Shown: one piece after another, positions 32,669 to 64,000 of the stretch | How positions within the stretch are numbered: position 1 is the stretch's first letter | How the letters are laid out: each line of letters starts with the position of its first letter | DNA from: Ranitomeya imitator | Lineage: Eukaryota | Reading direction: 5' to 3' | DNA length: 64,000 bases | Assembly: GCF_032444005.1 (NCBI RefSeq) | Contig: NC_091288.1 | Coordinates: 221,836,001 to 221,900,000, forward strand | Program-made: the position numbers and the translations under genes | Notes under the pieces: generated by a model | Told to the model about the DNA's origin: nothing | The model's input: the letters and a program-made list of their open reading frames with translations, nothing else | Databases searched by the model: none

Positions 32669-32819
32669 TTACGCATTAGAAGGTCCTGGAGATTTTTGTC
32701 TTTGACATCACAAATGTTTCTGTAGCTTTGGATTGCCAGGAATGAGAATCACAGATTGCAGAGAAGGATACAGCATGATCGTTATCCAGGAGATCATGGT
32801 TCCCAGGACACGTCCAATT
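32669..32819 (-). pseudogene. TAS2R: TAS2R remnant (TM7 and C-tail only), paralog of the gene at 37044
   Basis: Translates IGRVLGTMISWITIMLYPSLQSVILIPGNPKLQKHL*CQRQKSPGPSNA*, versus ...ATITWIIILLHPSLQSVILVSGNPKLQKHFFCQRQKPSGPSSA* in the paralog. The 3' flanks are also homologous. Confidence 0.88.
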
Positions 32820-33706
32820 TATAACCTTACATTTATCATTGTTAAACCTCATCTGCCAACTTGGGCTGAAAGGTGGCAGATGAGGTTTAACAATGATAAA
32901 TGTAAGGTTATACACATGGGAAGAAGGAATCAATATCACCATTACACACTGAATGGGAAACCACTGGGTAAATCTGACAGGGAGAAGGACTTGGGGATCC
33001 TAGTTAATGATAAACTTACCTGGAGCAGCCAGTGCCAGGCAGCAGCTGCCAAGGCAAACAGGATCATGGGGTGCATTAAAAGAGGTCTGGATACACATGA
33101 TGAGAGCATTATACTGCCTCTGTACAAATCCCTAGTTAGACCGCACATGGAGTACTGTGTCCAGTTTTGGGCACCGGTGCTCAGGAAGGATATAATGGAA
33201 CTAGAGAGAGTACAAAGGAGGACAACAAAATTAATAAAGGGGATGGGAGAACTACAATACCCAGATAGATTAGCGAAATTAGGATTATTTAGTCTAGAAA
33301 AAAGACGACTGAGGGGCGATCTAATAACCATGTATAAGTATATAAGGGGACAATACAAATATCTCGCTGAGGATCTGTTTATACCAAGGAAGGTGACGGG
33401 CACAAGGGGGCATTCTTTGCGTCTGGAGGAGAGAAGGTTTTTCCACCAACATAGAAGAGGATTCTTTACTGTTAGGGCAGTGAGAATCTGGAATCGCTTG
33501 CCTGAGGAGGTGGTGATGGCGAACTCAGTCGAGGGGTTCAAGAGAGGCCTGGATGTCTTCCTGGAGCAGAACAATATTGTATCATACAATTATTAGGTTC
33601 TGTAGAAGGACGTAGATCTGGGGATTTATTATGATGGAATATAGGCTGAACTGGATGGACAAATGTCTTTTTTCGGCCTTACTAACTATGTTACTATGTT
33701 ACTATG
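32820..33706 (+). mobile_element. 5'-truncated CR1 copy with a 39-bp inverted duplication at its 5' junction
   Basis: 32858-33706 is nearly identical to 14144-14997 of the full-length CR1; 32820-32858 is the exact reverse complement of 32874-32912. Confidence 0.95.
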
Positions 33707-37043: not shown

Positions 37044-37955
37044 TTACGCACTTGAAGGTCCTGAAGGTTTTTGTCTTTGACAAAAGAAGTGTTTCTGTAA
37101 CTTTGGATTGCCACTGACTAGAATCACAGATTGAAGAGAAGGATGCAGCAGGATAATTATCCAGGTAATAGTTGCCGGGAAATTTCCAATGTTCAGATAA
37201 ACTAACTTCACCCTCATGACTGCAACGCAGAACATCAAATCCAGGAATAACAGCAGAATCATTGTCCTGATGGCACAAATATGTCCCTGAAGGTGAGAAT
37301 ATTTGATATCAGACGAGTTCTTCTGAATCTTCCAGATGTGTCTAAGGAGAGATTTTACACAGAGCAGAATGCATAAAAATGTCAAAAGAAAGGGCAAAGA
37401 AGTCCCAAAAATGATCTTCACAAGTAAGAAGGACAAGTGGAAATCAAATCTATAGTCAATGACATTCGAGCTTCCATTGAAATGTAGATTTATCTGTGTA
37501 GTTGTCCATAGAAGGGGCAGATTAACGAGAATTGATCCCAAGGTTGACCCCAGGAGAAGCACATTCACAGCAGAGGACAATCTTGACTTCATCCATAGTA
37601 ACATTTGTTGGGAATAGTTGACCAGTTTTAAGCAGTAACAGATGGAGAGCCAAGAGGTGTTCCAAAAACAAATATCAATGAGAGATACGAATGTGAAAAT
37701 ATATGGTGAAAGGGGGATATCGAGGAGAAGAAGAAGAGCCTGTGAAAATAATAATCCTCCATAGATAAGTAAGACCTGGAGGAGAGCATTGACTGAAGCC
37801 ATGGCGAGGACCACCTTGTCACACCCACCAGCCGTCACATGCTGCGTCCAGTTTTTGATGTGAACTATGACAATGCCGAGATTCAAAACGATTCCTGAAA
37901 CCAAAGAGATGAAATTGATGACTAAGATGAAAACCCATGATGTTGATACCATCAT
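37044..37955 (-). CDS. TAS2R: Bitter taste receptor (TAS2R family), 303 aa
   Basis: SGIVLNLGIV (TM1), CFWNTSWLSICYCLKLVN (TM3), ECL2 sequon NGS, LPFLL...SLLRHIWKI, HPSLQSVILVSGNPKLQK. Confidence 0.94.
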   Translation of the reverse strand: MMVSTSWVFILVINFISLVSGIVLNLGIVIVHIKNWTQHVTAGGCDKVVLAMASVNALLQVLLIYGGLLFSQALLLLLDIPLSPYIFTFVSLIDICFWNTSWLSICYCLKLVNYSQQMLLWMKSRLSSAVNVLLLGSTLGSILVNLPLLWTTTQINLHFNGSSNVIDYRFDFHLSFLLVKIIFGTSLPFLLTFLCILLCVKSLLRHIWKIQKNSSDIKYSHLQGHICAIRTMILLLFLDLMFCVAVMRVKLVYLNIGNFPATITWIIILLHPSLQSVILVSGNPKLQKHFFCQRQKPSGPSSA

Positions 37956-41995: not shown

Positions 41996-44192
41996 TTTAT
42001 GCCAGAGCTGTATTTTACTCTGGGAAAACAAATTTTGCTAGAATAGTTTGCTGACTCCATATACAGAGCCCCTAAGCGCCAGAACAGCAGAATCCTCCCC
42101 TCACGTGACCCCACTTTGGAATTACATCCTTCCATAAATTTACCTACAGATGTACTTACGATTTTGACTCCATTGGCATTTTCCAGAAACAAGCAGAAGT
42201 GGTTGAAAATTGCAAATCTGCCAGTGTAGTGCCCATTACATTGCACTGTCCATTCTTTGTAGTGCCCACACGTTGTTGTGCCCACTACATTGTAGTGCCC
42301 ATACATGACACCAGCTCATGCTTCTGGAGACATGGACCCTTTTAATCAGGTGGGTTCTCATCACTACAGAAATGCCAGCCATGTGGACACTAAATGTGGT
42401 TTAGGCACACTGGGGCTCAGAAGGGAGGGGCCACTGGGAAACGCAGGATTCACTGGTTTTCTTTTGAGAGGCAAGGATACATAGCACTTTTCTGGAGCCT
42501 TTGTACTACCAGCAATGTGGAAGCCCCCTATATTTATGTTAACAGATTATGGACCTGAGTGGGAACTTGCTTTTTTTGTGACTTGAGTTGAGGCTTTTGT
42601 TGAGAACATTTTACGTAACATTTTGGACCACTTTTGTTCTGTGCTCTATGCTGAGCACTTATATTGAGGTGTCAAGCTAAATCTCCAAATTACATGATTC
42701 AGATGAAACCCACGAGGGATCCATTCACTAAAATGCGGCAACAGACTTACTCTAGACTGCGTCTGGCCTCTGTTCAGGGGTGCCCTTTTTTCAGAGGTGC
42801 ACAAACCTATGTCTGACCGCACTTTTATACACTGTTAAAAAGACAAACACCACCAGATCAGCAACTACAGTGTCTCCATCTAACTCATTATAGGAAATCT
42901 GTTGGGGGTTCTGTCTGAATCACATATTTCAGAGATTTACACGAAAACCCCGTTATAAGAGCTCAGTGCAGAGCACAGGATAAATGTGAACCAAGCCTTA
43001 CTGTGATCTTTGGGAGGCAGAATGAACAAATCAACAGTAGGTGAAGAATGTTTTATTTGTTTTTTTTTATGCTGTTCCTCATGCGGAATAAGCAATTAGG
43101 TGACTTTATTCTTTGGGTTGGCGCCATTACAGCGATATCAGATTTATATCGGTTTTTGTGTTTGGGTGCGGTCACACGATATAAAACACTTTTTATTGTA
43201 AAAACAAGCATTTGCATCACCGTTTTCTAAGAGCCATAATTTTACTATATTCCTGCAGACAGAGTCATTTTTGGGTTTGTTTGTTGCGGGACAAGTTAAT
43301 GTTTTTATTTGTACAAATTTCGAACACATGACATTTTTGATTGCTTTCTAGTCCCATTTTCGGGAGGCAGAATGAACAAGATCAAGCAATTCAGGAATTG
43401 TTTTGGTTTTTTTTTATGCCGTTTCACGTGTGGTAAAATTGATAAGGCAGCTTTATTCTTTGGGAATAGATGAGAGAGATGCCACCTGGGCTGCTGACAA
43501 ACATGTATCCCTTTAGTCATTATTTCTTACATGGTTTTTATTATTGTATGTTGTGCTTGAGAACTGATACAAGTAACGAGTCAGATATCCAGGTCAGTCA
43601 TGTATCACAGCGGCTTATGGTATCTGATGATGGAATGAGAGGCTTTCACTTTTCTGTAAATCTTCAGCTTCTGATGTGATGATCACCACGGCCAGCTCTT
43701 ATTGTGCATGCAGATGTTGTAGCTTTCATGTTCACAGACTTATAATTCACAGTCACAAGTGATTTCCATATGTAAAACCTGAGGATTCAGTGAAATCTAT
43801 TGTTGTTCTTTCTCTGGTTGATAGTTATGTAAATCCCCAGTTTTGCTATTCAAACTGCGGTCGGGTTTCTGTTACATTGTACAAATCATCCTTCAAGTCC
43901 TCTGAGAAGTGAGATGATGAGGCTGCTGCTAGAGACGGGAGGATTCATGGATATTCGGGTCCGTCGGGTTCTGCCGAACTTTAAAAGAAATTTTGGTTTG
44001 GGTAACAGAACAGTACCTGAAATTGATCCCCAATCCGAACCCCATTTACTTGAATATCAGGCCTGAACAGCAGGTGGTTCCCACGGTGTCCTCTGTATGA
44101 CAGCGTGGTAAACAGCAGCTCTGATCGGCGGTAACCTTACTGAAGTCACCGCTGGTAACAGTCGCTGGGTATTGCGGAGAGCTACACATTCC

Positions 44193-45016: not shown

Positions 45017-48000
45017 TCACCGAACCCTCACCAGAGCCCCCAGGCCGACCAGGATGAGCCACATGAAAGGCACGAACAAGATCGGGAGCATGGACATCAG
45101 AGGCAAAACCCAGGAATTATCTTCCTGAGCATAACCCTTCCATTTAACCAGATACTGGAGTTTCCGTCTTGAAATACGAGAATCCAAAATCTTCTCCACA
45201 ATATACTCCAATTCCCCCTCCACCAAAACCGGGGCAGGAGGCTCAACAGATGGAACCATAGGTGCCACGTATCTCTGCAACAATGACCTATGGAATACGT
45301 TATGTATGGAAAAAGAATCTGGGAGGGTCAGACGAAAAGACACAGGATTAAGAACCTCAGAAATCCTATACGGACCAATAAAACGAGGTTTAAACTTAGG
45401 AGAGGAAACCTTCATAGGAATATGACGAGAAGATAACCAAACCAGATCCCCAACACGAAGTCGGGGACCCACACGGCGTCTGCGATTAGCGAAAAGTTGA
45501 GCCTTTTCCTGGGACAAGGTCAAATTGTCCACTACCTGAGTCCAGATCTGCTGCAACCTGTCCACCACAGTATCCACACCAGGACAGTCCGAAGACTCAA
45601 CCTGTCCTGAAGAGAAACGAGGATGGAACCCAGAATTGCAGAAAAACGGCGAAACCAAGGTAGCCGAGCTGGCCCGATTATTAAGGGTGAACTCAGCCAA
45701 AGGCAAAAAGGACACCCAGTCATCCTGATCAGCAGAAACAAAGCATCTCAGATATGTTTCCAAGGTCTGATTGGTTCGTTCGGTCTGGCCATTAGTCTGA
45801 GGGTGGAAAGCCGAGGAAAAAGACAAGTCAATGCCTATCCTACCACAAAAGGCTCGCCAAAACCTCGAAACAAACTGGGAACCTCTGTCAGAAACAATAT
45901 TCTCTGGAATGCCATGCAAACGAACCACATGCTGGAAGAACAAAGGCACCAAATCAGAGGAGGAAGGCAATTTAGACAAGGGTACCAGATGGACCATCTT
46001 AGAAAAGCGATCACAGACCACCCAAATGACTGACATCTTTTGAGAAACGGGAAGGTCAGAAATAAAATCCATAGAGATATGTGTCCAAGGCCTCTTCGGG
46101 ACCGGCAAGGGCAAAAGCAACCCACTGGCATGAGAACAGCAGGGCTTAGCCCGAGCACAAATCCCACAGGACTGCACAAAAGTACGCACATCACGCGACA
46201 GAGACGGCCACCAAAAGGATCTAGCCACTAACTCTCTGGTACCAAAGATTCCAGGATGACCAGCCAACACCGAACAATGAAGTTCAGAGATAACTCTATT
46301 CGTCCACCTATCAGGGACAAACAGTCTCTCCGCTGGGCAACGATCAGGTTTATTAGCCTGAAATTTTTGCAGCACCCGCCGCAAATCAGGGGAGATGGCA
46401 GACACAATTACTCCTTCCTTGAGGATACTCGCCGGCTCAGATACACCCGGAGAGTCGGGCACAAAACTCCTAGACAGAGCATCCGCCTTCACATTTTTAG
46501 AGCCCGGAAGGTACGAAATCACAAAGTCAAAACGGGCAAAAAACAACGACCAACGAGCTCGTCTAGGATTCAAGCGTTTGGCAGACTCGAGATAAGTCAA
46601 GTTCTTATGATCAGTCAATACCACCACGCGATGCTTAGCTCCTTCAAGCCAATGACGCCACTCCTCGAATGCCCACTTCATGGCCAGCAACTCTCGGTTG
46701 CCCACATCATAATTTCGCTCAGCAGGTGAAAACTTCCTGGAAAAGAAAGCGCATGGTTTCATCACTGAGCAACCAGAACCTCTCTGTGACAAAACAGCCC
46801 CCGCTCCAATCTCAGAAGCATCAACCTCGACCTGGAACGGAAGAGAAACATCTGGCTGACACAACACAGGGGCAGAAGAAAAACGACGCTTCAACTCTTG
46901 AAAAGCTTCCACAGCAGCAGAAGACCAATTGACCAAATCAGCACCCTTCTTGGTCAAATCGGTCAATGGTTTGGCAACACTAGAAAAATTGCAGATGAAG
47001 CGACGATAAAAATTAGCAAAGCCCAGGAACTTTTGCAGACTTTTCAGAGATGTCGGCTGAGTCCAATCATGGATGGCTTGGACCTTAACCGGATCCATCT
47101 CGATAGTAGAAGGGGAAAAGATGAACCCCAAAAATGAAACCTTCTGCACACCAAAGAGACACTTTGATCCCTTCACAAACAAAGAATTAGCACGCAGGAC
47201 CTGAAAAACCGTTCTGACCTGCTTCACATGAGACTCCCAATCATCCGAGAAGATCAAAATGTCATCCAAGTACACAATCAGGAATTTATACAGGTACTCT
47301 CGGAAGATGTCATGCATAAAGGATTGAAACACTGATGGAGCATTGGCAAGTCCGAACGGCATCACTAGATACTCAAAATGACCCTCGGGCGTATTAAATG
47401 CAGTTTTCCATTCATCGCCTTGTCTGATTCTCACCAGATTATACGCACCACGAAGATCTATCTTAGTGAACCAACTAGCCCCCTTAATCCGAGCAAACAA
47501 ATCAGATAACAATGGCAAGGGGTACTGAAATTTAACAGTGATCTTATTAAGAAGGCGGTAATCTATACACGGTCTCAGCGAACCATTCTTCTTGGCTACA
47601 AAAAAGAACCCTGCTCCTAATGGCGACGATGACGGGCGAATATGCCCCTTCTCCAGGGATTCCTTCACATAACTGTGCATAGCGGCGTGCTCAGGCACGG
47701 ATAAATTAAACAGTCGACCTTTAGGGAATTTACTACCAGGAATCAAATTGATAGCACAATCACAATCCCTATGCGGAGGTAGGGCATCGGACTTGGGCTC
47801 ATCAAATACATCCCGGTAATCAGACAAGAACTCTGGAACCTCAGAAGGGGTGGATGACGAAATTGACAGAAATGGAACATCACCATGTACCCCCTGACAA
47901 CCCCAGCTGGACACCAACGTGGAATTCCAATCCAATACTGGATTATGGGCTTGTAGCCATGGCAACCCCAACACGACCACATCATGCAGATTATGCAAGA

Positions 48001-48551
48001 CCAGAAAGCGAATAACCTCCTGATGTGCAGGAGCCATGCACATGGTCAGCTGGGTCCAGTATTGAGGCTTATTCTTGGCCAAAGGTGTAGCATCAATTCC
48101 TCTCAATGGAATAGGACACTGCAAGGGCTCCAAGAAAAACCCACAACGTTTAGCATAATCCAAGTCCATCAAATTCAGGGCAGCGCCTGAATCCACAAAC
48201 GCCATGACAGAATACGACGACAAGGAGCATATCAAGGTAACGGACAGAAGAAATTTTGACTGTACAGTACCAATGGCGGCAGACCTAGCGAACCGCTTAG
48301 TGCGCTTAGGACAATCAGAGATAGCATGAGTGGAATCACCACAGTAGAAACACAGCCCATTCAGACGTCTGTGTTCTTGCCTTTCAACTCTGGTCATAGT
48401 CCTATCGCACTGCATAGGCTCAGGTTTAATCTCAGGTAATACCGCCAAATGGTGCACAGATTTACGCTCACGCAAGCGTCGACCGCTCTGAATGGCCAAA
48501 GACATAGACTCATTCAGACCAGCAGGCATAGGAAATCCCACCATGACATCC
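45017..48551 (-). pseudogene. gag C-terminus and pol (PR, RT, RNase H, integrase, chromodomain) of gypsy family 2
   Basis: 1175-aa frame with FVDSGAA, YLDDILI, VDASEIG, HCSVLAGH...C..C, D-D-E integrase residues and YLVKWKGY chromodomain. A 1-bp deletion near 45108 (A4 versus A5 in the copy at about 61365) truncates the chromodomain end. Confidence 0.93.
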
Positions 48552-48555
48552 TTAA

Positions 48556-51067
48556 CCCTCCGTCACATACAACTGATCTGACAGGCGCTTCTCTTTTACT
48601 TTCATTTCTCCTTCCTCACCAGATTGTGAGGAAACCCCCTCCCTCCAGGTAGTCTCCTGTCTCTTGAAGGTCTGTGAAACCTGATATCACAGTTGGATTT
48701 CAGAGCTTCAGGGGAGAGGATATAGCTGCACAGATCTCTCAGGCTCATTGTATGTGAATACGTCACATTCAGTAAGGTTGGTATTTTATGTTTTTATTCA
48801 TCACAATAGTTTATTTAGCTTGTTTTATGAATGTATAGCACAAAATGTGAGGATATTTCATAGAAATAAGGGAGATTTTATAAAAGAAAGTGTGCTGCTC
48901 AGGCATATACAGTAGTTCCCTAACATATTCCTTCTCTTGCTTCAGATTATCTGCTGAAATGGAGAGGAAAATGTACAATTTATCCAAACAACTTGATGTT
49001 GAGGAAGTAACAAACATGCTGTTAGATGATAGAGACGTCACACTGAATGAGGATTTAGGAGAGGAAATTGAGATTGATTCTCATGATGAGGTGGAAGAAT
49101 GTGTCCTGGATTCTGAAACAGAGCAAGATGGTGACAGTGGTGAGGATGAAGAAGTTGGATCATATTATATTGGAAAAGATAAAAATACTAAATGGAACAA
49201 GAAGCCATTCCAGAAAAAACGTAGGGAACCTTTAAACATTATTACTCACCTTCCTGCAGTAATAGGAACTGCACGTAATGCAAAAACTGCAGTTGAATGC
49301 TGGAACAGTATATTTACAGATGACATTCTGGACTCTATTGTCACATATACCAACCAATATATAGACATTATAAAGGACAAGTACATCTGCAACAGAACCA
49401 TCAAGCCCACAGATTAAATAGAACTGCATGCTTTTTTTGGATTACTGTACCTTGCAGGAGCTTATAGGGCAAATAGACAAAGTTTGGAGGAACTTTGGGG
49501 TAAAGATGGGGATGGAGTTGAAAAATTTAGCCTTGTTATGTCCATAAACAGATTCAAGATTCTAATTCGTTGCCTTCGGTTTGATGACAGAACTACCCGA
49601 ACCGAACGCAAAACACATGACCGACTTGCTCCAATTCGTGATATATTTCAAAGATTTGTTGTAAACTGTAAACAAAGTTATTACCCTGGAGAGAATCTCA
49701 CTATTGACGAAATGCTCCCTGGTTTTCGTGGTAGATGTGCCTTTCGTCAATATATTCCATCAAAGCCAAACAAATATGGAATAAAAATTTATGCCCTTGT
49801 TGATGCCAGTAAGACCTACACTTACAACCTGGAAGTTTATGCAGGAAAACAACCAGAAGGTCCTTACTGTGTGAGCAACAAACCCATTGATGTTGTAAAA
49901 AAAGACTGGCTGAACCCTTATTTGGATCGGGTCGCAATATTACAGCTGACAATTGGTTTACAAGTTGTGATCTGATTGATTATCTGAAAATTCAGAAGCT
50001 GTCATATGTGGGAACTGTAAGAAAAAACAAAAGGGAATTGCCGCCACAGTTTGTAAGTGTGAAAGAGAGACAACAGTACAGCAGTATGTTTGCATTCCAT
50101 AATGGAAAGGCTTTAGTTTCCTATGTACCACATGCCAAAAAAATCGTACTTCTTCTATCAACACTTCATGATGATGCTGCCATCGATCCTGGGACTGGGG
50201 CAGAAAAAAAACCGGAGATAATTACATTTTACAATGCCACCAAAGGGGGTGTGGATACAGCAGATCAGATGTGCTCCACTTTCAACGTCAGCAGAAACAT
50301 CAAACGCTGGCCAATAGTCATATTTTTTGCTATGTTGAATTTGGGTGGTATAAATTCACAAGTAATTTATCTTGAAAACAAGCTTGAACCACTCCGTAGA
50401 CGATTGTATCTGAAAAAATTGGCCCATGAACTAGTACTTGGAGAGCTACGCAGGAGAAGCGTGAAAACAATCGGTATCCCCTCTCGCCTTCAAGTTCAGC
50501 TCAAAAGGTTCCGCCCAGAAGATGATGGTGAAAAGTCACCATCTGCACCACCTCACAAAAGAAGGAGATGCACCACCTGCCAAACGGAAAGCGGAACCAG
50601 AAGGCTTTCAAATTATGAATGTCTCAAATGTCATAAAGCAATTTGCCTGACACATGCAAAAATGGTGTGTAATTCTTGCTATTTGCTCTGCAAGTGTGAC
50701 TTTTCTGGGGAAACCTCAGCATCTACTTCTGATTGAATATGTTTTTAATAGTACTTAAGGTACCTTAAAATTAAGTTTGTGTTCAAAAATTTTCTTTGTA
50801 CATTTTTTTGAGAGAGTCGAACTGGGGACTATTTGGCGGGAGTTTTGAAAAGTTTGTATTTCATAGTTATTAGTTTTATGTTAAGTAAATTTTTTTTTTG
50901 CAACTGATTATGTGTAGTCTCTTTTATTACATCCCTATGAAGGTCACTGATCACTTTTAGAGCACTGAAATTGCAAACATTAGATATTATAGGTATTTTT
51001 CCAGCAGGCGCCTGACAGGCACATTGTATGTGAACTCGTTAGTCCGAATATTGTATGTGACGGAGGG
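48556..51067 (+). mobile_element. piggyBac DNA transposon, 2512 bp, complete ends
   Basis: Perfect 17-bp TIRs CCCTCCGTCACATACAA; TTAA TSD at 48552-48555 and 51068-51071. Removing it restores the gag frame ...GLSEAIKDVMVGFP.... Confidence 0.97.
48959..50736 (+). pseudogene. piggyBac transposase (about 590 aa) with one nonsense codon (49415-49417) and one frameshift in an A7 run (about 49897-49903)
   Basis: DDD triad in TIDEM, TADNWF and GGVDTAD; PSKPNKYGIK; C-terminal cysteine-rich domain CTTC...CLKCHKAICLTH...CNSC. Confidence 0.93.
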
Positions 51068-51705: not shown

Positions 51706-52508
51706 TGTTATGATAGGCAATTCAGTAACACAATGTACATAGCGATCAGAGCACATACAGTGATCTGACAATAACCCAAAATAATAGAACGAGCTCTGAG
51801 ACGTGGGAACTCTGTAGACCGCAATTCCTGATCCTCTCCAAACACAACTAGAGGCAGCCGTGGATTGCGCCTAACGCTCCCTATGCAACTCGGCACAGCC
51901 TGAGAAACTAACTAGCCTGAAGATAGAAAAATAAGCCTACCTTGCCTCAGAGAAATACCCCAAAGGAAAAGGTAGCCCCCCACATATAATGACTGTGAGT
52001 AAGATGAAAAGACAAACGTAGGGATGAAATAGATTCAGCAAAGTGAGGCCCGATATTCTAGACAGAACGAGGATAGGAAAGATAACTTTGCGGTCTACAC
52101 AAAACCCTAAAGAAAACCACGCAAAGGGGGCAAAAAGACCCTCCGTACCGAACTAACGGCACGGAGGTACACCCTTTGCGTCCCAGAGCTTCCAGCAAAA
52201 CAAATAGACAAGCTGGACAGAAAAAAAAGCAACAAATAGCAAAGAAGCACTTAGCTATGCAGAGCAGCAGGCCACAGGAATGATCCAGAGAAACACAAGT
52301 CCAACACTGGAACATTGACAGGAAGCATGGATCAAAGCATTAGGTGGAGTTAAGTAGAGAAGCAGCTAACGAGCTCACCAGATCACCTGAGGGAGGAAAC
52401 TCAGAAGCTGCAGTACCACTTTCCTCCACAAACGGAAGCTCCCAGAGAGAATCAGCCGAAGTACCACTTGTGACCACAGGAGTGAACTCTGCCACAGAAT
52501 TCACAACA
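51706..52508 (-). repeat. 5' LTR, gypsy family 2
   Basis: Near-identical to 44193-44995; followed on the minus strand by GTACAGGAAGCC at the PBS position. Confidence 0.96.
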
Positions 52509-53424
52509 CATTCCCACGCTGTCACTCTGTGAACCAGCAGCTGTGACTGGCGGTGACAAAGTGACCACCAGTCAAGTACCAGCTGATGACTACTACTCTT
52601 ATCAGCCAGCGCCTGGTCTCACTGATAGCAGCGATAGCAGGCGACGCTGATGAGAGTAGTCATCAGCTGGTGTCTGTGCATAGCGATATCTTTAGTGCAA
52701 TCCACAGTCACCGGAGACAAAGAAGATGAACGTTGAGTACTTTGTGGGAACATTTCAATAATAAAGACTTTTCTTTATTGAGTACATTAATCTCTACAGA
52801 GTGACAACGTCCTACATGGCGCGGTAGCGGAATTCTGCTCTCATGGCGAGCGGCTGTCTAGGGTGCAGGAGGCAAAAGGAAATTCTTATGAGATATTGAG
52901 ATGTAAAATGTCAAAAGCATAAAAATATAAACTTCATAGAAGAAGCCAAAAGCGAACGACGTTCATCTAGTATTCAGAGGGAGGATCAGCTGGACCAGGG
53001 ACCACAACAATGGACTCCTTGTCTGTAGCCCCAATGTTCTCCAGAACTTTAGTTAATTTTTCACCTAAACTTCATTTATTTTATTTTATTGTTCCTTTAG
53101 TTTCTGACAAGAAAAGCAAGAAAAGTTATTTGATGAATGATTAAAAAAACCTCCAGATTTCTGAGTCCTCGCTGGGCTGATGCTTTATCATCAGATAGGT
53201 ATGAAGGATTTTCTTTACCAAAACCTTCTACCTAAGCCTCATTGCTGGCTACTGACTAATAACAAGGTCATTACACCGGCTATATCTGAAGAATGCTGCA
53301 AACTACACATTTGATTTAATTTTTCCAATTACAAAAATAAGCCGTGTTTTATTCCACAGAAAGGTGTTATGGTCACGGGAAAACCCATTCAATGGATAAC
53401 CCTCATCATTACTAATCCTCTTAC

Positions 53425-53601
53425 CTCCATTTATGGAGCTTCTCATCTTCACCAGGGGCTCTAAAAGTTTCTTCTCCTCTGTGGTGAAGAGGAACAAGTC
53501 TAGAGCTTTCTCTTTAATGGACGGCTGACTGCTTAAGATCCGTAATTTCTCCTCATCATTACCGTCATTTAGGTCATCGACCACCACAATCACATTTTTA
53601 T
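53425..53601 (-). CDS. Exon: second half of TIR-like domain 2
   Basis: tttttag|AT AAA AAT GTG...GGA G|gtaag; NKNVIVVVDDLNDGNDEEKLRILSSQPSIKEKALDLFLFTTEEK. Confidence 0.85.
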
Positions 53602-56600
53602 CTAAAAACAATGTAAAAAATCCAAGACGATTCAGCATAATATGCCTCATTGAATGGTAACAATTGATTCATATTTGTACATTTTCATCTGAGAAGATTT
53701 GTACTGCAGATGTGATCTTCACCCCGAAGACCGAAACACCGAGGAACCAAATCCCAATCTAAGACCAATACGTTAAGACACTAAATAACCAAAACCAAAA
53801 ATACCACATAAATCAGTGGAGAACCAAGTATCTAATGAAGCCTGAAACAAGAAACACTACAGACCCTTTAAGGTGGTTGTGTAATGAAAAATAAATAAAA
53901 CAAAGTTTAGAAACAACTTACTTCAATACTTTGATTATGTTTGGTGGCCGATCCACTCTGGCCTCAGGACGGCCGCTCTGCTCCCAACTTGCGTTCCATA
54001 CAGGAGAGTTCTTTGTGTTTTGGCACATCGTCAGGTTTGTGTGTGAAGGGAGCCGGCTTACTGCTCATTGCTATAGCGAAGACAGACTCCTCTGTCACAA
54101 CAAAAGTATTGACCGAGAAGAGTCGGTGACTAAGCGATGGAAATGAGCAACCAACCAACGTCAACACACAAGGCAATGGCCACCTGCCGACACAGGAAAC
54201 GTTCTTATATGTTGAGCACCAGAGCAAGCCTGTGACCAGAGGGGATTGAAGAACCTGCACTAATGGAACAATATTATCATCTTAATGTTTTTCCCAAATG
54301 TATGCATCATTTTTTGGGTTGGACAAGTCCTACAAGACCCTGTAAAAAGTCTGTGCCATTGCCACTTACTCATCATGGAGGACATGTAGTCCAGCTCATC
54401 GTCATACAGAGAATCAGTGACATCCGTGATATTGATCCTCCCTCGGTTTTTGGTGTGATACAAGATTCCAAAGGTACAATTAGAGACGTTAGTCATGAAC
54501 TGTTGGAAGCCCCTGTTGGAAATATAATAAGACTGGACGTTTTCTACAGAACCTCGGAAATAGTCAGATTCCAGCTCCATCTTCAGCCATTCATATTCAC
54601 TTTCTGAAGATCTTGAAAAGATTCCAACCTTATGGCCCTGGTAAAATCAGAAAGACCATAGAGAAAAGAGTAAAACAAGAGAGATATAAAAAACGTCAAC
54701 TTGAGATCCTTTATGATCACCCATGAGATTTATCTTTTTTTTCTAAAGTAAGAATTTGCCAATTGAGAAATCTTATTTCTTGAAATCCTGCTCTAAATGT
54801 GCCTAATGTGTGCATCACTTATAGAATCACATCCAATATTGTCAGCTGTATACCAGCTGTGAAGAATGTGTACCCATTGTCAAATATGTGTAAGTCAATT
54901 TGACATTACTAAGGCTCTATTTGCACTAAAAAGCTTAAGATGTGTGGGATGTAGTCCTAGAAGACCTCAGAATGTTGTACATGTCTTCTCAGGGCAATTG
55001 GAGGCTTTTCGTCACTATACTTGTGCCACAAAATGAATTGTTGGAAATATTTGGTGAAGTTGGTGAATTCGGATGTAAAAACATTTGCTCTTCTCTATTC
55101 ATGTGAAAACATTGTGAACTTTTATGTCAATCTTAGAATTTCAAAACGAGATGAACTTTCCCAATTTTGAATTCCAATTCAATTTTTCTAATTAAATGCA
55201 CAACCATCCTAATAATTTGGGTGGAGGTATTCCTTAACATCGAGACATCTGACAACACTTAGAATATTGTCTATGGAGCTGTAGACATTCTCTCTTCTCC
55301 TCTTGTAGACATCTCATCTAATCCCCATCACTTTTCTCATGTTTGTCCATGTAGCAGCATTAGGAGTCGTCTCTTACCGTCCAGGAAGCCGAACCTGGAA
55401 CAAAAGTGCAGAAAAGCTGAAATTCACTATGTGCGTTGAGTGACACCTCAACCTCTAATCTTATTCTGTGGAAGTATTTTAGACTTAGACTCATGGTACC
55501 TTTTAAAATTGTCTTCATTTTCTCCATCTTCGTGTTGTAAAGCTTGAGATTGTCTTTATACCAGGCGATTTGTTGTTTTGAGAACTTTAGAACCGGAAAA
55601 TTGTGTTGACCGTTGATTTGTCGAGGAGGACAATTGTCTGGAGTCTTTTCACTCAGCAAAATTATAACATTTTTCAGGCCTTAAAGTCAAAGAGAAAAAA
55701 GTAATACTCAGAAAGACTCAATCTAAGCCGCAAGTCTAAATGGAAATGTCTTACATTATAGGAGCACATTATTCTGATACAGATACAGCAACTTCTGAAA
55801 CGGCCTGGTCACATTACCCTGGATGTCTAGTCTGTGTCAAGTGCTTCAGTCATACTTGTGATATACAAAACTAGACACAAAGCTAATTTACCGTAATAAA
55901 AAGACAACTCCTCCACTTCTCGCGATGACTCTGAATCCCATTGGTCACTTTCAAAACAGAACACGACACAAGAGCAGGAGGAGACGCTTTTCCTGAATTT
56001 CCAATCTCCATCAATTTTAAAAATTTCAATCTTTTCATCACTTTTATACTCATTGAAGATTTCTGATTTCAGCGCGTCCTTAATCCAGTCACACGAGTAC
56101 GGAGACTTAGTGACAACCTGCAACTCGTAAGAAGTAACAGCATCAGAACGGAAAGTGGGCGAGGATATTTCATTTATCAATACTGGGTATTGATGTAAAG
56201 AAGAAAATGTTTCAACATGTCTCCGTGTGAAGAGAATATCTAAGACAGTAGCCTCCACTGTCTCTATGGATGACCAATTAGACAAAGGGGCTGGTTTAGC
56301 TGTCAGCCAGCCTCCTTCACGCACCACCAGTACAGGAAGCATTACTCAGAATTGGATGTTCCCATTAACATATCAGGACATAAACTTCATTGGTACTGCA
56401 TCATGAGTGGTAAGAGATGACACTGAAGGGGTCACACAGATTCCACCACTGCCACCAATTTTCAAGAGATGACGCCAGAGAGACCACGCAGAGTCCCACT
56501 GCTGCCACCAATTGTCAAATATCATAGCCTGGGGGGACGTAACTGATCCACCAACACTGTTATTTTTGTTTCATGAACAGCCCTCTCCTCCCCCTATTGT

Positions 56601-59600
56601 CCGGACAATTACACAATTACCAGCTGTTTCCAATAAGGCCGGTTATGGGGAAAATAATAGTGAGCATAGGGTATATACACCTCTGATTCCCACACATGGG
56701 ATTTGTGTATATCCCCCTGACACAGTCACTGCTAGCTCCATGATAACCCACAAAACTACTCGCTGCCACTATTGATCGTTTTTTATATACAGGCCGACTG
56801 GAAGACTGATTCTGGTAATATATGACTTTGGAGTGCGGTTTAAAGAACAAAAGTAACAGAACTATTAAATGTTATCCTCAATCCATTATCCATTATAATA
56901 TTTGGCCATCGTATGTGATACAGAGACCTTTGGCCTCTAAAACACAAGCACCTGGCTGAGGGACAATCGCTGCACCCCCTCTATCTACACTCCTGATCCT
57001 TCTGGTTAAATATCTTTCTTCTAATACTAAAAAAAAATTAATTCATCAAAGAATGCTGAAAATAGTCCACTGGCAGGCTCATGTGAAATACTGCTATAGA
57101 GGTGACAGGAGCAACATTGTGTCCAGTGTAAAAACAAAATACTAGACAATGTGGAAAAACATCATCCATACGTCATAAGGGCGAGTATATGTAAAGGACG
57201 TGATGAGACGGGCACAAGTTCATCATATGACATCTTGCAAGTGTGTGATGCTGTAAAAAGGAAATTACAATGATGGATCTCAAGTAGTAACATCCCTAAA
57301 CTCCACACAGCACCCACCAACCTAAAAAATAATAAATAATAGACCTTACCCACAAAGACGAAACACATTTATGCCAATTTACATATTTCCAATTATCTGA
57401 AAAATAGAGAAAAGTGAAGAACATGATCGACACTGCACAAAGGGTTAATCGATCAGGACAGATCTATATACAGTAAGCACTCACCTGATATTGTGGGGTC
57501 GACAAGATCAAAGTCTTCATTAAATCCTAGAAAAGATCATAAAATACAGTTACTGATCATGGTCCCTCTCATCATATAATCCCCCCGTAATAAAATTACA
57601 ATGGTAACATGTCAGGGACACAGCTGGTTACATCAGGGGGCTCTATAGGTGGGGGGCAGGGGTATTATTAGTGTGCTCCTCCTATGGTTCCTCACTTCTA
57701 CATAACATAATAAACTAATTTACTATCTATAAGTTTGAGCTTTTTCGTTGATGATTTTTCTAGTTCTCAGATAGATAAATGTCACTGAGAACCGCGGCAG
57801 CATGAGTGTGAACAGCAGGAGAACGGCTGATTTCCAGCAGAGCCGCGGAGTCAGATAGAGCTGCAGGCTTAGTCCAACGCTCTTCAATATTTACATCAAT
57901 GAGCTGGCCACTGTTCTGGAATCCTCCGAGGCATCAAGTCTCACACTGTATGATGCCCAGGTGAAATTCTTCCTGTAAGCAGATGACCTACTATTGCCAT
58001 TAACAACAGAGGCAACCTGAAAATCTTGGAGAAATTCAACTCCACATGGCCACTACCAATCAACCCCCCAAAACCAATATCATGGTGTTACAGAAGAGAA
58101 AGCCAAGATGGGACCAGCACTCTCCATTTGTGCTAAACAACTGTACATTTACAGGAACGGACAAATATACCTACCTGGGCCTGAAAACTCACCAGTCAGG
58201 AAGCTTCAAACAAGCCATAGAGACCCTGAAAGACAAGGCCTGCAAAACCTTCTATACCATCCATAGGAAACTCTACCATCCTAAGCTACCAGTGATGGTC
58301 TGGCTAAAAATCTTCGATGCCATAATCACCCCAATCCTCCTGTACAGCAGTGAAGTCTGGGGCCCTCACACATCCCCAGACAGGTCAATGTGGGATTCCA
58401 GTCTAACAGAAATATTCCCCCTGGAATTCTGTAAACACCTTCTCCAGGTCCATCAGAGCACCACCAACATTGCCTGCCGAGCTGGGCAGATTCCCACTGC
58501 ACCTAGCAGTCCTGAAGAGGGTGCTATCCTTCCAGGATCACCTACAGAGTAGCAACACAAGCTCCCATCACCATAAAGCCATGCTACATATAGGTGGTCC
58601 CCACAATCCAGGACCCCTAGAACAGCTCACTCAATCCCAACCTGACCGAACCATCAACCAAAACAACCTGACAAAAGTCACAATCAGGAAGATGGTAGAG
58701 GAGGGGCAGGAGAGGTATGTCAGTGACTGGAGGAACGAGATCATCAGCTCACAGAAACTGACCATGTACCGGAGCCTACAGAGAGACTACAGACTGGCCC
58801 CATATCTGGAGAAACTCACGGACCCCAGAGACCGCCAGATCCTGAGCCGATATAGACTCAGCGCCCACAGTCTGGCCATCGAATGTGGCCGACACAGGCA
58901 GAGCTACAAGCCCAGGGAGGAAAGACTGTGCCAACACTGTGACCAGGAGGCCATAGAGGACGAAACCCACTTCCTGCTACACTGCTCCAAATACTCAGCA
59001 GTGAGGGACACTCACTTCAGGAGACTTTCCGATCTCTTTCCGGATTTCAGCTCCATGAAGGAGGAAGAGGAAGCATATATCCTGCTGGGGGAAGAAGAGA
59101 GCGCAGTGGAGAGAACAGTGCAGTATGAAAGCGTGGGGGAAAGAGCAACACAGTACGTGATCGCAGAGGAGCGCAGTGCAGTATGTGAGTGTGTTTCATA
59201 GGCTGTGAGAAAGACAACTATAAGATGCCATGGACTTCCATAACCCTCAATCTGAGTTTTTCTCACGGTGCTAGCAGGGATCTCACCAAAGTCATGTCAG
59301 TTCAGCCCGGCAGGGAAAGCAAAAAAGTTAAACTGTGTTTAGTCTTATCTCTAATAAACGACTTTATTCTGCCTGTGTCTTTATTTACCATGCAACTATA
59401 GGATTAGTAATGGAGAAGTTTCATATGGACGCCACTCCACTAGTAATCCGTGGGCTTAATGTCACCTGACAATACAAAGGTGACATCAACCCCACAAATA
59501 TAAACCCCACTTGCCACTACTACCGCTTTTAGCAATTGAAAAAAAACAGCATGGGGACCCCACTATTCTTGATAACCAACCTTGTTGAAGCTGACAGCTG

Positions 59601-60387
59601 AGGATTGCAGCCTCCAGCTGTGAGTTTTGACTGGCTGATTATCAAAAATACAGGGGACCCCACGCCATTTAAAAAAAAAAAATATTTATTTATAGTGCAG
59701 ACGCCAGCTGATAAATACTCGCCGCTCCTGCTCTAACTGTTATTAGCAGCAGCAGGTGTCGGATGATGGGAGCAGTTGTCCCATCAGCTGATACCAGTGA
59801 CTGCAGGTGACTGGAGGTAAACTGTATACCTCCGATCACAGCTGAGTGTTCCCGCTGTCTTTTGACCGCATGGGAACTGAGGCTCTCTGACCGCCGAGGA
59901 TGATTTCACCGCCAATCACATGACAGCATGGCAAACACTGGATGTTCGGGTTCCCCATTCAAGTGAATGGGGTCCGGGTTTGGATTCGGGTTCTGATCTG
60001 GTACCCGAATCTGAACTTTTTGTAACTGTTCGGCCGAACCCGAACATCCAGGTGTCCGCCCATCTCTCGTACTGGACAACCTTTTAAGTCATCAAAGTGA
60101 AATCCTTGTCCTATTAAGAATGGCTACATCTGGAACACATAAGTAGCTGATTTCCCACCTTCAGGTTTTGGTTGATTTGCGGATGTTTCTTCTTCATTCT
60201 TCAGATTCATCATCTCAGATCCTTCATCTGAAACTAAGATATAAAAGAAAATAGATGTCAGCTCCTAGAAGTTTCTGGGCTAATTCTGCTTTTATAGTTG
60301 TAAAATCAGTATATTAATTATTTTATTTATCTATAGATATTTTACCTGGCAGCGGAGGATCTTCTATAACATTTTCTACAACGGTTT
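53425..60387 (-). CDS. Multi-exon gene for an uncharacterised protein with two tandem TIR-like alpha/beta domains; N-terminus outside the window, last exon unresolved
   Basis: GT-AG exons in compatible phases: 60387-60346 (1/1), 60227-60159 (1/1), 57526-57485 (1/1), 56182-55892 (1/1), 55679-55500 (1/1), 55394-55378 (1/0), 54637-54370 (0/1), 53601-53425 (1/1). They join into one stop-free frame. The domain identity is inferred from motif pattern only. Confidence 0.8.
54370..54637 (-). CDS. Exon: first half of TIR-like domain 2
   Basis: ttttaccag|GGC CAT AAG...ATG A|gtaagt; GHKVGIFSRSSESEYEWLKMELESDYFRGSVENVQSYYISNRGFQQFMTNVSNCTFGILYHTKNRGRINITDVTDSLYDDELDYMSSMM. Confidence 0.88.
55378..55394 (-). 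CDS. 17-nt micro-exon (GSASWT) linking domains 1 and 2
   Basis: cttttgttccag|...|gtaag; supplies exactly the phase 1-to-0 change needed to join the flanking exons. Confidence 0.78.
55500..55679 (-). CDS. Exon: second half of TIR-like domain 1
   Basis: tttgactttaag|GC CTG AAA AAT...AAA G|gtacc; GLKNVIILLSEKTPDN..., parallel to KNVIVVVDD of domain 2. Confidence 0.8.
55892..56182 (-). CDS. Exon: first half of TIR-like domain 1 (divergent)
   Basis: ttttcttctttacatcaatacccag|...TAC G|gtaaat; YELQVVTKSPYSCDWIKDALKSEIF...KFRKSVSSCSCVVFCF...SREVEELSFYYG. Confidence 0.78.
57786..59250 (+). mobile_element. 5'-truncated, frameshifted non-LTR retrotransposon (L2/Crack-like within the CR1 group; subclade uncertain), intronic and antisense to the TIR-like gene
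   Basis: Degenerate RGVR.SC.LSP.LFNIYINEL and L.ADDL RT motifs; YTYLGL; C-terminal ERLCQHC...EDETHFLLHC. Confidence 0.85.
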
Positions 60388-60488
60388 CTATAATATAGAA
60401 ATATATTATCTGATAAATCTTATACAAATATACACAAGTGATTGTTCTACTCTGTCTTTTCTTAGTGTATCGTAGAAGGGTACGAGGC

Positions 60489-61253
60489 TGTTATGAACGC
60501 AATCCAGTGACACAGAGGACCAACAGTGTACCAGCGATCAGAGCACATATAGTGATCTGACAGTAACCCAAAAATATAAGAACGAGCTCTGAGACGTGGA
60601 ATCTCTGTAGACCACAATCCCTGAACCTATCCTAAACACAACTAAAGGCAGCTGTGGATTGCGCCTCAAATACTACCTATGCAACTCGGCACCGCCTGAG
60701 AAGCTGACTAGCCTGAAGATAGAAAAACAAGCCTGACTTGCCTCAGAGAAATACCCCAAAGGAAAAGGCAGCCCCCCACATGTAATGACTGTGAGTGAGA
60801 TGAAAAGACAAACGTAGGGATGAAATAGATTCAGCAAAGTGAGGCCCGATATTCTAAACAGAGCGAAGATAGTAAAGAGAACTTTGCAGTCTACAAAAAA
60901 CCCTAAATCAAAAACCACGCAAAGGGGGCAAAAAGACCCACCGTGCCGACTAACGACACGGTGGTACACCCTTTGCGTCTCAGAGCTACCAGCAAAACAA
61001 AAGACAAGCTGGACAGAAAATTAAGCAACAAAAAGCAAAAATGCACTTATCCAAGCAGGGCAGAAGTCCACAGGAAAGATCCAGAAGCTCAGATCCAAAC
61101 TGGAACATTGATCAGGAGCAAGGAAAACAGAATCATGTGGAGTTAAATAATGAAGCAGCTAACGAGCTCCCCGGAACACCTGAGGGAGGAAGCTCAGAAG
61201 CTGCAGTACCCCTTGTGACCACAGGAGTGAATTCAGCCACAGAATTCACAACA
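60489..61253 (-). repeat. 3' LTR of the third gypsy element (765 bp)
   Basis: Homologous to, but clearly diverged from, 44193-44995. Confidence 0.93.
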
Positions 61254-64000
61254 GTACCCCCCCCTTGAGGAGGGGTCACCGAACCCTCACCAGAGCCCCC
61301 AGGCCGACCAGGATGAGCCACATGAAAGGCACGAACAAGATCGGGAGCATGGACATCGGAGGCAAAAACCCAGGAATTATCTTCCTGAGCATAACCCTTC
61401 CATTTAACCAGATACTGGAGTTTCCGTCTAGAAACACGAGAATCCAAAATCTTCTCCACAATATACTCCAATTCCCCCTCCACCAAAACCGGGGCAGGAG
61501 GCTCAACAGATGGAACCATAGGTGCCACGTATCTCCGCAACAACGACCTATGGAATACATTATGTATAGAAAAGGAGTCTGGGAGGGTCAGACGAAAAGA
61601 CACAGGATTGAGAACCTTAGAAATCCTATACGGACCAATAAAACGAGGCTTAAACTTAGGAGAGGAAACCTTCATAGGAATATGACGAGAAGATAACCAA
61701 ACCAGATCCCCAACATGAAGTCGGGGACCCACACGGCGTCTACGATTAGCGAAAAGTTGAGCCTTCTCCTGGGACAAGGTCAAATTGTCCACTACCTGAG
61801 TCCAGATCTGCTGTAACCTGTCCACCACAGAATCCACACCAGGACAGTCCGAAGACTCAACCTGTCCTGACGAGAAACGAGGATGGAACCCAGAATTGCA
61901 AAAAAATGGAGAAACCAAGGTAGCCGAGCTGGCCCGATTATTAAGGGCGAACTCAGCCAATGGCAAAAAGGACACCCAATCATCCTGGTCTGCAGAAACA
62001 AAACATCTCAGATATGTTTCCAAGGTCTGATTGGTTCGTTCGGTCTGGCCATTAGTCTGAGGATGGAAAGCCGAGGAAAAAGATAGGTCAATACCCATCC
62101 TACCACAAAAGGCTCGCCAAAACCTCGAAACAAACTGGGAACCTCTGTCAGAAACAATATTCTCAGGAATGCCATGCAAACGAACCACATGCTGGAAGAA
62201 CAAAGGCACCAAATCAGAGGAGGAAGGCAATTTAACCAAGGGCACCAGATGGACCATTTTAGAAAAGCGATCACAGACCACCCAAATGACTGACATCTTC
62301 TGAGAAACGGGAAGGTCAGAAATGAAATCCATCGAAATATGTGTCCAAGGCCTCTTTGGGACCGGCAAGGGCAAAAGCAACCCACTGGCACGAGAACAGC
62401 AGGGCTTAGCCCTAGCACAAGTCCCACAGGACTGCACAAAAGCACGTACATCCCGTGACAGAGATGGCCACCAGAAGGATCTAGCCACTAACTCTCTGGT
62501 ACCAAAGATTCCAGGATGACCAGCCAACACCGAACAATGAAGTTCAGAGATAACTTTATTAGTCCACCTATCAGGGACGAACAGTTTCTCCGCTGGACAA
62601 CGATCAGGTTTATTAGCCTGAAACTTCTGTAGCACCCTCCGCAAATCAGGGGAGATAGCAGACACAATTACTCCTTCCTTGAGGATACCTGCCGGCTCAG
62701 ATACCCCCCGGGGAGTCGGGCACAAAACTCCTAGACAGAGCATCCGCCTTCACATTCTTAGAGCCCGGAAGGTACGAAATCACAAAGTCGAAGCGGGCAA
62801 AAAATAACGACCAACGGGCCTGTCTAGGATTCAAGCGCTTGGCAGACTCGAGATAAGTCAAGTTCTTATGATCTGTCAATACCACCACGCGATGCTTAGC
62901 TCCTTCAAGCCAATGACGCCATTCCTCGAATGCCCACTTCATGGCCAGCAACTCTCGGTTGCCCACATCATAATTACGCTCAGCGGGCGAAAATTTCCTG
63001 GAAAAGAAAGCACACGGCCTCATCACAGAGCAACCAGCACCTCTCTGTGACAAGACCGCCCCTGCTCCAATCTCAGAAGCATCAACCTCGACCTGGAACG
63101 GAAGAGAAACATCTGGCTGACACAACACAGGGGTAGAACAAAAACGACGCTTCAACTCCTGAAAAGCTTCCACAGCAGCAGAAGACCAATTAACCAAATC
63201 AGCACCCTTCTTGGTCAAATCGGTCAATGGTTTGGCAATGCTAGAAAAATTACCGATGAAGCGACGATAAAAATTAGCAAAGCCCAGGAACTTTTGCAGA
63301 CTTTTCAGAGATGTCGGCTGAGTCCAATCATGGATGGCCTGGACCTTAACCGGATCCATCTCGATAGTAGAAGGGGAAAAGATGAACCCCAAAAATGAAA
63401 CTTTCTGCACACCAAAGAGACACTTTGATCCCTTCACAAACAAGGAATTATCACGCAGGACCTGAAAAACCGTTCTGACCTGCTTCACATGAGACTCCCA
63501 ATCATCCGAGAAGATCAAAATGTCATCCAAGTAAACAATCAGGAATTTATCCAGATACTCACGGAAGATGTCATGCATAAAAGACTGAAACACAGATGGA
63601 GCATTGGCAAGTCCGAACGGCATCACTAGATACTCAAAATGACCCTCGGGCGTATTAAATGCAGTTTTCCATTCATCTCCTTGCCTGATTCTCACCAGAT
63701 TATACGCACCACGAAGATCTATCTTAGTGAACCAACTAGCCCCCTTAATCCGAGCAAACAAGTCAGATAACAATGGCAAGGGATACTGAAATTTAACAGT
63801 GATCTGATTAAGAAGGCGGTAATCAATACACGGTCTCAGCGAACCATCCTTCTTGGCTACAAAGAAGAACCCTGCTCCCATTGGTGATGACGATGGGCGA
63901 ATATGCCCCTTCTCCAGGGATTCCTTCACATAACTGCGCATAGCGGCGTGTTCAGGCACGGATAAATTAAATAATCGACCTTTAGGGAATTTACTTCCAG
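60489..64000 (-). mobile_element. Ty3/gypsy chromovirus, family 2 (divergent subfamily); 3' LTR and pol, continues beyond the right edge
   Basis: LTR 60489-61253 (TGTTAT...CACAACA), PPT, RT-RH (62697-63959) and IN-chromodomain (61133-62743), separated by a +1 insertion in a C run at about 62704-62709. Confidence 0.96.

Follow-up and report, generated by a model that had tools for sequence, protein, structure and literature searches.

Most animal TIR adaptors are homotypic interaction modules, and the TIR domain of BCAP is a non-catalytic adaptor. According to two 2026 preprints, the DUF4062 domain, also termed NIR, is a TIR-like enzyme that cleaves nicotinamide adenine dinucleotide (NAD) with a catalytic Glu and is present in bacteria and in human TEP1 (10.64898/2026.05.01.722283; 10.64898/2026.09.04.749371). 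We analyzed a 64,000-nucleotide stretch of the mimic poison frog Ranitomeya imitator (RefSeq assembly GCF_032444005.1, contig NC_091288.1, positions 221,836,001 to 221,900,000 of the forward strand), referred to as the window and numbered from its first letter, which carries on its minus strand a spliced gene for a protein with two tandem copies of a domain of approximately 130 residues. Most probably, this domain is a strongly diverged branch of the flavodoxin-type folds of the TIR, DUF4062 (NIR), and nucleoside-deoxyribosyltransferase-like kind. Because the preprints show that its nearest neighbor in two structure libraries is an NADase, the hypothesis of a TIR/NIR-like domain that cleaves NAD(P)+ or a nucleotide is both timely and testable.

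The frog domain shares with the TIR domains (Pfam TIR and TIR_2; RRS1/RPS4, SARM1, and TcpC) its size of ∼130 to 145 residues, its five beta-alpha units, and the placement of strand 1 between strands 2 and 3. Both also have a long loop that leads from strand 3 into the third helix, which opens with a conserved Glu and a Leu behind it, and both are located at the ends of GTPase/NTPase-type immune proteins and in tandem arrays. It differs from them in having no profile match to any TIR-clan Pfam model and a very short equivalent of the BB loop, and we know of no counterpart in TIRs of its YHTKNRGRxNxTD loop and of the invariant-like Asp-Asp after strand 4. DUF4062/NIR (TEP1, NWD1, Swarozyc, Avs2, and Evangelion) is the nearest ESM atlas neighbor outside the family, with a template modeling (TM) score of 0.53 to 0.56 over 112 to 114 residues, and is among the first neighbors in the AFDB clusters. 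Both the frog domain and DUF4062/NIR have an aromatic residue in strand 1 (Phe in 98 of 129 diverse frog copies) and, at the third helix, a Glu that directly precedes an aromatic or aliphatic residue (D-S-L-Y-D-x-E-L in the frog family), and both are N-terminal to NTPase modules in immune-type proteins. However, the DUF4062 model PF13271 was matched neither by domain 2 of the gene (full listing) nor among the 25 of 97 families listed for the 129 copies, no Q/W/E motif, described for DUF4062 along with a strand-1 Phe and an acidic-SYT with E-Y, was recognized, the TM-score is only ∼0.55, and the frog family occurs in tandem arrays, which are not described in the preprints.

A spliced gene already annotated in RefSeq

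The RefSeq entry for the locus is XP_069591227.1, "uncharacterized protein isoform X2" (homolog P0157 in our word-indexed searches), one of four isoforms of the gene (XP_069591226 to XP_069591229). Residues 59 to 431 of this entry equal the translation of ten minus-strand exons of the window with zero differences, and all of the introns are of the GT-AG type. Residues 1 to 58 are absent from the window and map past base 64000; the 5′ exons must sit there because a Ty3/gypsy element at 61133-63959 occupies the window upstream of the first visible exon. The gene is real, spliced, and annotated in RefSeq, though unnamed and uncharacterized. Its exons in the window, in the direction of transcription and including alternative ones, are as follows.

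60346..60387, minus strand: cassette mini-exon (ETVVENVIEDPPLP), GT-AG, phase 1 to phase 1, included in X1 to X3 and skipped in X4
60159..60233, minus strand: acidic linker exon (VSDEGSEMMNLKNEEETSANQPKPE), annotated acceptor 60233, exact match to XP_069591227.1
57485..57526, minus strand: mini-exon (GFNEDFDLVDPTIS), phase 1
57350..57396, minus strand: 47-nt exon (DNWKYVNWHKCVSSLW) absent from the earlier model, exact RefSeq match, GT-AG
55892..56117, minus strand: first exon of domain 1 (strand 1 to helix 3), acceptor ttgcag/GTTGTC, phase 0, Glu193 codon at 55919-55917
55500..55679, minus strand: second exon of domain 1 ((G)LKNVIILL onward and the long linker helix), preceded by a phase-1 intron; a block of orthologous complementary DNA (cDNA) ends at 55500
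55378..55394, minus strand: 17-nt micro-exon (GSASWT) of the interdomain linker, phase 1 to phase 0
54370..54637, minus strand: first exon of domain 2 (strand 1 to helix 3) with the motifs GIFSRS, YHTKNRGRINITDV, and YDDEL, Glu348 codon at 54397-54395
53425..53601, minus strand: second exon of domain 2 ((N)KNVIVVVDD to the C-terminal helix), preceded by a phase-1 intron at a position homologous to that in domain 1; a block of orthologous cDNA ends at 53425
53081..53103, minus strand: 23-nt terminal coding exon of X3 ((E)TKGTIK, stop), an ending conserved in orthologs (ENK, GTIK)
43929..43978, minus strand: alternative terminal exon of X1, X2, and X4 ((V)RQNPTDPNIHESSRL, stop), 9.4 kb downstream, beyond transposon insertions

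A transcript from another frog supports this structure. The Logan contig L059 (SRR27929899, 1808 nt) consists of one unbroken open reading frame (ORF) of 392 codons, which is an ortholog, and its alignment to the window breaks into five blocks. Two of the exon boundaries, 55500 and 53425, coincide with block ends, block starts lie within 2 to 3 nt of 54637 and 53601, and the last block (53090-53032) lies in the terminal exon of the X3 type. The locus is probably an expressed gene of Ranitomeya imitator, and its protein has an acidic N-terminal linker assembled from mini-exons ahead of the two domain copies.

The gene had been described in an earlier note, made from the letters of the window alone, as a hidden gene of eight exons. 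All of the peptides quoted there are found on the minus strand where they had been placed, and the eight exons join in frame with GT-AG introns; the 17-nt micro-exon 55394-55378 is real, with a counterpart at the same place in homologs (GSAPWK, GSSSWT, or DSAPLK). The gene is not hidden, because RefSeq already has four isoforms of it, and the model missed exon 57396-57350 and lacked the terminal exons. Three boundaries needed correction. The residues ELQ, taken as the start of domain 1 before VVTKS, are intronic, the real acceptor being 56117 in phase 0; the acceptor of the second mini-exon, placed at 60227, is annotated six bases upstream at 60233, adding Val-Ser; and the coding sequence, ended at 53425, continues to 53103-53081 (X3) or 43978-43929 (X1, X2, and X4). 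Two candidate structures were rejected. An in-frame domain-1 acceptor at 56182 (cccag/TA, phase 1) is not the one used by RefSeq and the orthologs, which have exon 57396-57350 and acceptor 56117, and read-through of exon 8 to a stop at 53306, partly conserved in one paralog (P0007), is not the main form, as the orthologs and the cDNA splice at 53425.

Isoforms X1, X3, and X4 carry an additional Gln (SASWTQGHK), encoded by the very CAG that forms the acceptor trinucleotide of exon 54637 (window 54637-54640, minus strand); the dinucleotide preceding this CAG is AC, not AG. The Gln form is also present in Dendrobates tinctorius and in an older public model from R. imitator. That older model (P0024), a near-identical copy compared here with window 60227-56117, reads two mini-exons in wrong frames and thereby reaches a start codon (MKKKHPQINQNLK...), and its 3′ end continues into sequence derived from a long terminal repeat (LTR). 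These errors indicate that the gene is easily mis-modeled. The gain in annotation at this locus is modest, since RefSeq already holds the gene.

Two homologous domains, one of them probably degenerate

Domains 1 and 2 are 24% identical by pairwise BLASTP, and a family hidden Markov model (HMM) built from copies of the domain-2 type also recognizes domain 1 (domain E-value 5e-7). The phase-1 introns that precede (L)KNVI in the two domains, at 55892 and 54370, split the same codon column, that of the conserved Gly before K-N-V. The shared intron position and the homology together identify the two domains as an internal duplication, in agreement with the earlier note. No further copy of the domain was found by tblastn within the 64-kb window.

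The AlphaFold2 model of the two-domain protein has a mean predicted local distance difference test (pLDDT) score of 85 and a predicted TM (pTM) score of 0.81, and domain 1 has the same core as domain 2. Exon 57396-57350 is predicted to supply domain 1 with an additional beta strand at the N-terminal side, which pairs with its strand 1 (model residues 6-13 and 16-23), the helix 4 region of domain 1 is poorly ordered, and a long linker helix is present. Glu193 of domain 1 is kept in 17 of 18 homologs, with nearly every other member of the conserved site set replaced. Both domains have the Glu, but the proposal of two domains with a catalytic Glu overstates domain 1, because nearly all of the rest of the site set is lost there. 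The most fitting view of domain 1 is that of a degenerate partner that keeps the fold and the Glu.

A large family of anuran proteins

With the first and largest exon of domain 2 as query, a search at E ≤ 0.001 retrieved 361 clusters of proteins grouped at 50% identity, of which 339 reached E ≤ 1e-10, so that the family comprises at least 361 clusters. All named members are anuran, from more than 20 genera that extend from Ascaphus, Bombina, and Xenopus through Neobatrachia and include Discoglossus, Rhinophrynus, Pelobates, Spea, Leptobrachium, and many neobatrachians. Nearly all of them are called "uncharacterized" or "hypothetical," as the earlier note had stated for the frog relatives; UniRef labels three of them "TIR domain-containing protein" and one fragment "NB-ARC domain-containing." Word-indexed searches with one protein and with a 129-sequence profile returned frogs only, with no caecilian, salamander, or fish protein. 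Structure and language-model searches hint at distant relatives: one protein of 268 residues with 30% identity, several with 16 to 27% identity (one of them "AIG1-type G domain-containing"), and unnamed clusters mostly of Echinodermata and Cnidaria. From their accession series we take the distant AFDB relatives to be from shark and sea urchin. A tblastn search of plasmids with domain 2 yielded haloarchaeal acidic-protein noise only, no match below E 1e-3 and no ranavirus relative was present in the viral structure library, and no paper on the family was found under the Xenopus locus names or frog TIR expansions.

Individual members contain one to six copies of the domain, in some cases joined to other modules. 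Kinesin motors are fused to it in Xenopus laevis (LOC121398805), X. tropicalis, and Discoglossus, a URGCP/GVIN GTPase module in a Bombina "interferon-induced very large GTPase 1," and P2RX7_C in Bombina LOC128642224. Some of these long members may result from fused gene models; the kinesin form was seen in three species. Loci on single chromosomes are numbered consecutively, which suggests that the genes form tandem clusters. The members make up a very large multigene family of Anura, for which Pfam has no model.

Predicted fold and conserved polar residues of domain 2

Domain 2 (residues 268-413) was modeled with AlphaFold2 from the 129-sequence alignment. The model is confident (mean pLDDT 95.3, pTM 0.89) and shows a five-unit alpha/beta fold of ∼130 residues in which strand and helix alternate five times; a loop of 16 residues separates strand 3 from helix 3. 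The five-stranded alpha/beta fold expected in the earlier note is therefore the one predicted. Mean-field coevolution analysis gave useful loop contacts and no clear strand-strand pairs. Coevolution couples the loop after strand 1 to those that follow strand 2 (11-39/40) and strand 3 (10-63/64), strand 1 to helix 2 (4-45/47/48), and the long loop to the end of strand 2 (36-75/76, 39/40-68). These contacts fit a strand 1 located between strands 2 and 3, i.e., the 2-1-3 arrangement of flavodoxin and TIR; the order 2-3-1 does not fit them. The alignment to the RRS1 TIR is collinear over model residues 1-139.

In the model, Glu348, the Glu of the YDDEL motif, belongs to the first turn of helix 3, and strand 4 follows twelve residues later. 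This corresponds to the position of the catalytic Glu in helix alphaC of TIR domains, to which the residue had been assigned beforehand. All 18 close homologs have the Glu in domain 2, and it is present in 92 of the 129 diverse copies and in 314 of 376 near-complete copies (84%). Around it, domain 2 has a set of polar residues that comprises Ser-Arg after strand 1, Tyr-His after strand 3, the Gly-Arg-x-Asn-x-Thr-Asp loop, a Tyr-Asp pair that precedes the Glu by two to three residues, Asp-Asp after strand 4, and a Gln in helix 4. Across the 376 copies these residues are kept or lost together. The Glu covaries strongly with Arg9, Asn69, Tyr78, and Gln115; the probability of Arg9 is 0.94 in copies with the Glu versus 0.29 in copies without it, and Asn69 is present in 94% versus 32%. 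The set lies at the C-terminal edge of the sheet, as does the ligand-binding side of doubly wound folds. Domain 2 is the canonical copy and probably the ligand-binding or catalytic one.

Relation to TIR and other fold families

In Foldseek searches with the domain-2 model, the RRS1/RPS4 TIR was the top PDB match, and TIR-STING, CAP12 TIR, and BCAP TIR were also among the matches; the CAP12 TIR was again found with the structure of a family representative. In the AFDB clusters and the ESM atlas, DUF4062 and ThsB came next after the members of the family. The ThsB TIR-like (PF08937) and CAP12/Pycsar TIR (PF10137) domains are thus structural neighbors, though weak ones (AFDB clusters, Swiss-Prot, and atlas). 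TIR structures did not score clearly above other flavodoxin-like folds, and with the two-domain model the TM-scores were below 0.31.

For profile comparisons, TIR sequences were taken from Escherichia coli CFT073, namely, tcpC (TIR_2/TIR) and the neighboring ThsB_TIR gene. In the serU island of this strain (L003:32764-34328), tcpC adjoins the convergent ThsB_TIR gene and a macro-domain gene. The frog alignment (A1) was compared by hhalign with 55 ThsB-type relatives from genomes (A3) and 14 TIR_2 relatives from plasmids (A4); relatives of TcpC from viral contigs came from a single locus. In the frog alignment to ThsB_TIR, the frog Glu falls on the invariant ThsB_TIR Glu, and in the control comparison of ThsB_TIR with TIR_2 this invariant Glu aligns with that of TIR_2; the placement of the Glu speaks for a TIR-like reading.

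The reading of the domain as a TIR-like enzyme is a plausible hypothesis. As a whole, the account that best explains the data is an expressed frog gene with a two-copy TIR/NIR-like domain for which we propose NAD(P)+ cleavage; we favor it tentatively, at somewhat below an even chance of being right in all its parts. Under this account, domain 1 would pack against domain 2 as a fixed pseudo-dimer, and domain 2 would bind and cleave NAD(P)+ or a related nucleotide as TIR and NIR modules do, using Glu348 for catalysis. Cleavage would occur when copies come together, i.e., activation would be by pairing, and the family would act as an effector or signaling module in frog innate immunity. The only pointers to an immune role are the fusion to a GVIN-type GTPase, the fast expansion in tandem, and the analogy to TIR and NIR modules.

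Several observations weigh against this account. Pfam scans of the exon pieces and of the 129 domain copies gave scattered noise only among the matches listed, with no Pfam TIR, TIR_2, ThsB, or DUF4062 match among them; of the TIR clan, none was listed above noise, and PF10137 was touched in 3 of the 129 copies (best E-value 0.014). The family profile found no TIR among PDB sequences at E ≤ 10, the best match being caspase-3 (E-value 0.15), and phmmer with a member that UniRef labels as TIR gave no TIR match. By hhalign, the frog profile aligned to ThsB_TIR over 111 columns at P 0.09 only, and no alignment to TIR_2 was obtained; both comparisons used shallow alignments and cannot decide the matter, because the control of two accepted clan members itself reaches only P 0.15. 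The Foldseek TM-scores to known folds are only 0.45 to 0.55, the language-model features rank CENP-M (0.62) and AIG1/GIMAP (0.54 to 0.59) nearest, with low scores below the reliable range, and the loop from strand 2 to helix 2, at the position of the BB loop, has ∼5 residues. Finally, the two residues of the Asp-Asp after strand 4, a motif that we know from no TIR family, are conserved in 95% and 92% of the 376 copies, above the Glu at 84%. Because the Asp-Asp is more conserved, the Glu is a candidate catalytic residue and not the sole one.

Three other explanations were considered. The TIR-like or flavodoxin-like domain could be a non-enzymatic adaptor or scaffold that serves homotypic interaction only, its tandem copies building signaling assemblies and its polar residues forming the interface. 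The one to six tandem copies, the fusions to motors and large GTPases, the fixed arrangement of domains 1 and 2 in the AlphaFold2 model (pTM 0.81), the persistence of degenerate copies such as domain 1 that are conserved among orthologs, and the presence of the non-catalytic BCAP TIR among the matches would all agree with such a role; the co-conserved set at the C-terminal edge of the sheet, however, sits where doubly wound alpha/beta folds typically have a ligand or active site and not an interface, and we consider the adaptor rather unlikely. The polar residues would play a different part if the domain is a nucleotide- or nucleoside-acting flavodoxin-type domain that is not derived from TIR, either a relative of the 2-deoxyribosyltransferases or CMP (cytidine monophosphate) N-glycosidases or an independent lineage. 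In that case the most important residues would be the Asp-Asp that follows strand 4 and the Tyr-His that follows strand 3, both of them more conserved than the Glu, and the Foldseek matches do include the CMP N-glycosidases BcmB and MilB and, in the viral library, phage deoxyribosyltransferases. Yet no Pfam deoxyribosyltransferase match was among those listed, the scores are no better than those of TIR, and the known proteins (PDT, MilB, and BcmB) are oligomeric bacterial enzymes. As these families are commonly grouped with TIR, this explanation, which we regard as improbable, overlaps with that of a TIR/NIR-like domain.

Under the third explanation, the domain would be a degenerate relative of P-loop GTPases, that is, a CENP-M-like pseudo-GTPase or a decayed AIG1/GIMAP-type domain without the P-loop, acting as a structural or regulatory module. 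CENP-M and AIG1/GIMAP are the nearest named families by language model, the hydrophobic strand that ends in Asp-Asp resembles a Walker B motif, and one UniRef fragment is named "NB-ARC domain-containing" and one member is fused to a GVIN-type GTPase. However, the feature scores (≤0.62) are far below a reliable level, and strand 1 is followed not by a Walker A GxxxxGK[ST] but by SRSSES (GIFSRSSES), with a loop of three residues before the helix. Between strands 2 and 3 the frog domain has a helix where G domains carry an antiparallel hairpin, and after members of the family it is DUF4062 and ThsB, not GTPases, that come next in the AFDB clusters and the ESM atlas; we regard this origin as very improbable.

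Beyond the TIR/NIR-like two-domain protein itself, the family could represent a new animal lineage of TIR/NIR-like domains that cleave NAD(P)+ or nucleotides, massively expanded in Anura, with catalytic copies of the domain-2 type and degenerate copies of the domain-1 type in intramolecular pseudo-dimers or arrays and plugged as an effector onto interferon-type giant GTPases, kinesins, and P2RX7-tail domains. This wider claim is a speculative one and, in our estimate, rather unlikely; if true, the expanded lineage would be an undescribed vertebrate counterpart of the TIR effector systems of bacteria and plants. Should the domain prove to be an active enzyme of the TIR/NIR-like kind, the frog genes for a vertebrate immune module that cleaves NAD or nucleotides would number in the hundreds; the only human counterparts known to us are SARM1 and, since 2026, TEP1, and the tandem of a canonical and a degenerate copy would be a natural model for switching by pairing. 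Even without catalysis, an anuran-wide family that has no Pfam entry and takes up a sizable unannotated share of amphibian genomes is relevant to studies of immunity to chytrid fungi and ranaviruses.

Neighboring elements in the window

The gene lies beside a cluster of TAS2R genes, as the earlier note had stated, and the window also contains transposable elements, including a long interspersed nuclear element (LINE).

4370-5272 (minus), 17789-18760 (minus), 23880-24809 (plus), 27061-27996 (plus), and 37044-37955 (minus): five intact single-exon TAS2R ORFs, Pfam E-values 4.5e-20 to 6e-39
11016-14887, plus strand: LINE, apparently intact, with a GDSL-esterase-type ORF1 and an ORF2 of 926 codons (endonuclease and reverse transcriptase)
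32733-33596, plus strand: 3′ fragment of the same LINE
45017-48544, minus strand: Ty3/gypsy element of the chromovirus type (reverse transcriptase, RNase H, integrase, and chromodomain), one ORF of 1175 codons
48890-50736, plus strand: three consecutive ORFs, of which the third (50008-50736) matches Pfam DDE_Tnp_1_7 (piggyBac type) and the first has no match
61133-63959, minus strand: second Ty3/gypsy copy of the chromovirus type, two ORFs, directly upstream of the first exon in the window

The piggyBac-type ORFs are located between exon 8 and the distal alternative last exon. LTR-like related sequence flanks 52000-52700 and 60400-61200. A long array of imperfect 30-nt repeats at 22056-23392, on both strands, sits between two of the TAS2R genes; several of its frames are open, and one of them encodes GSGEDLCLST-like units.

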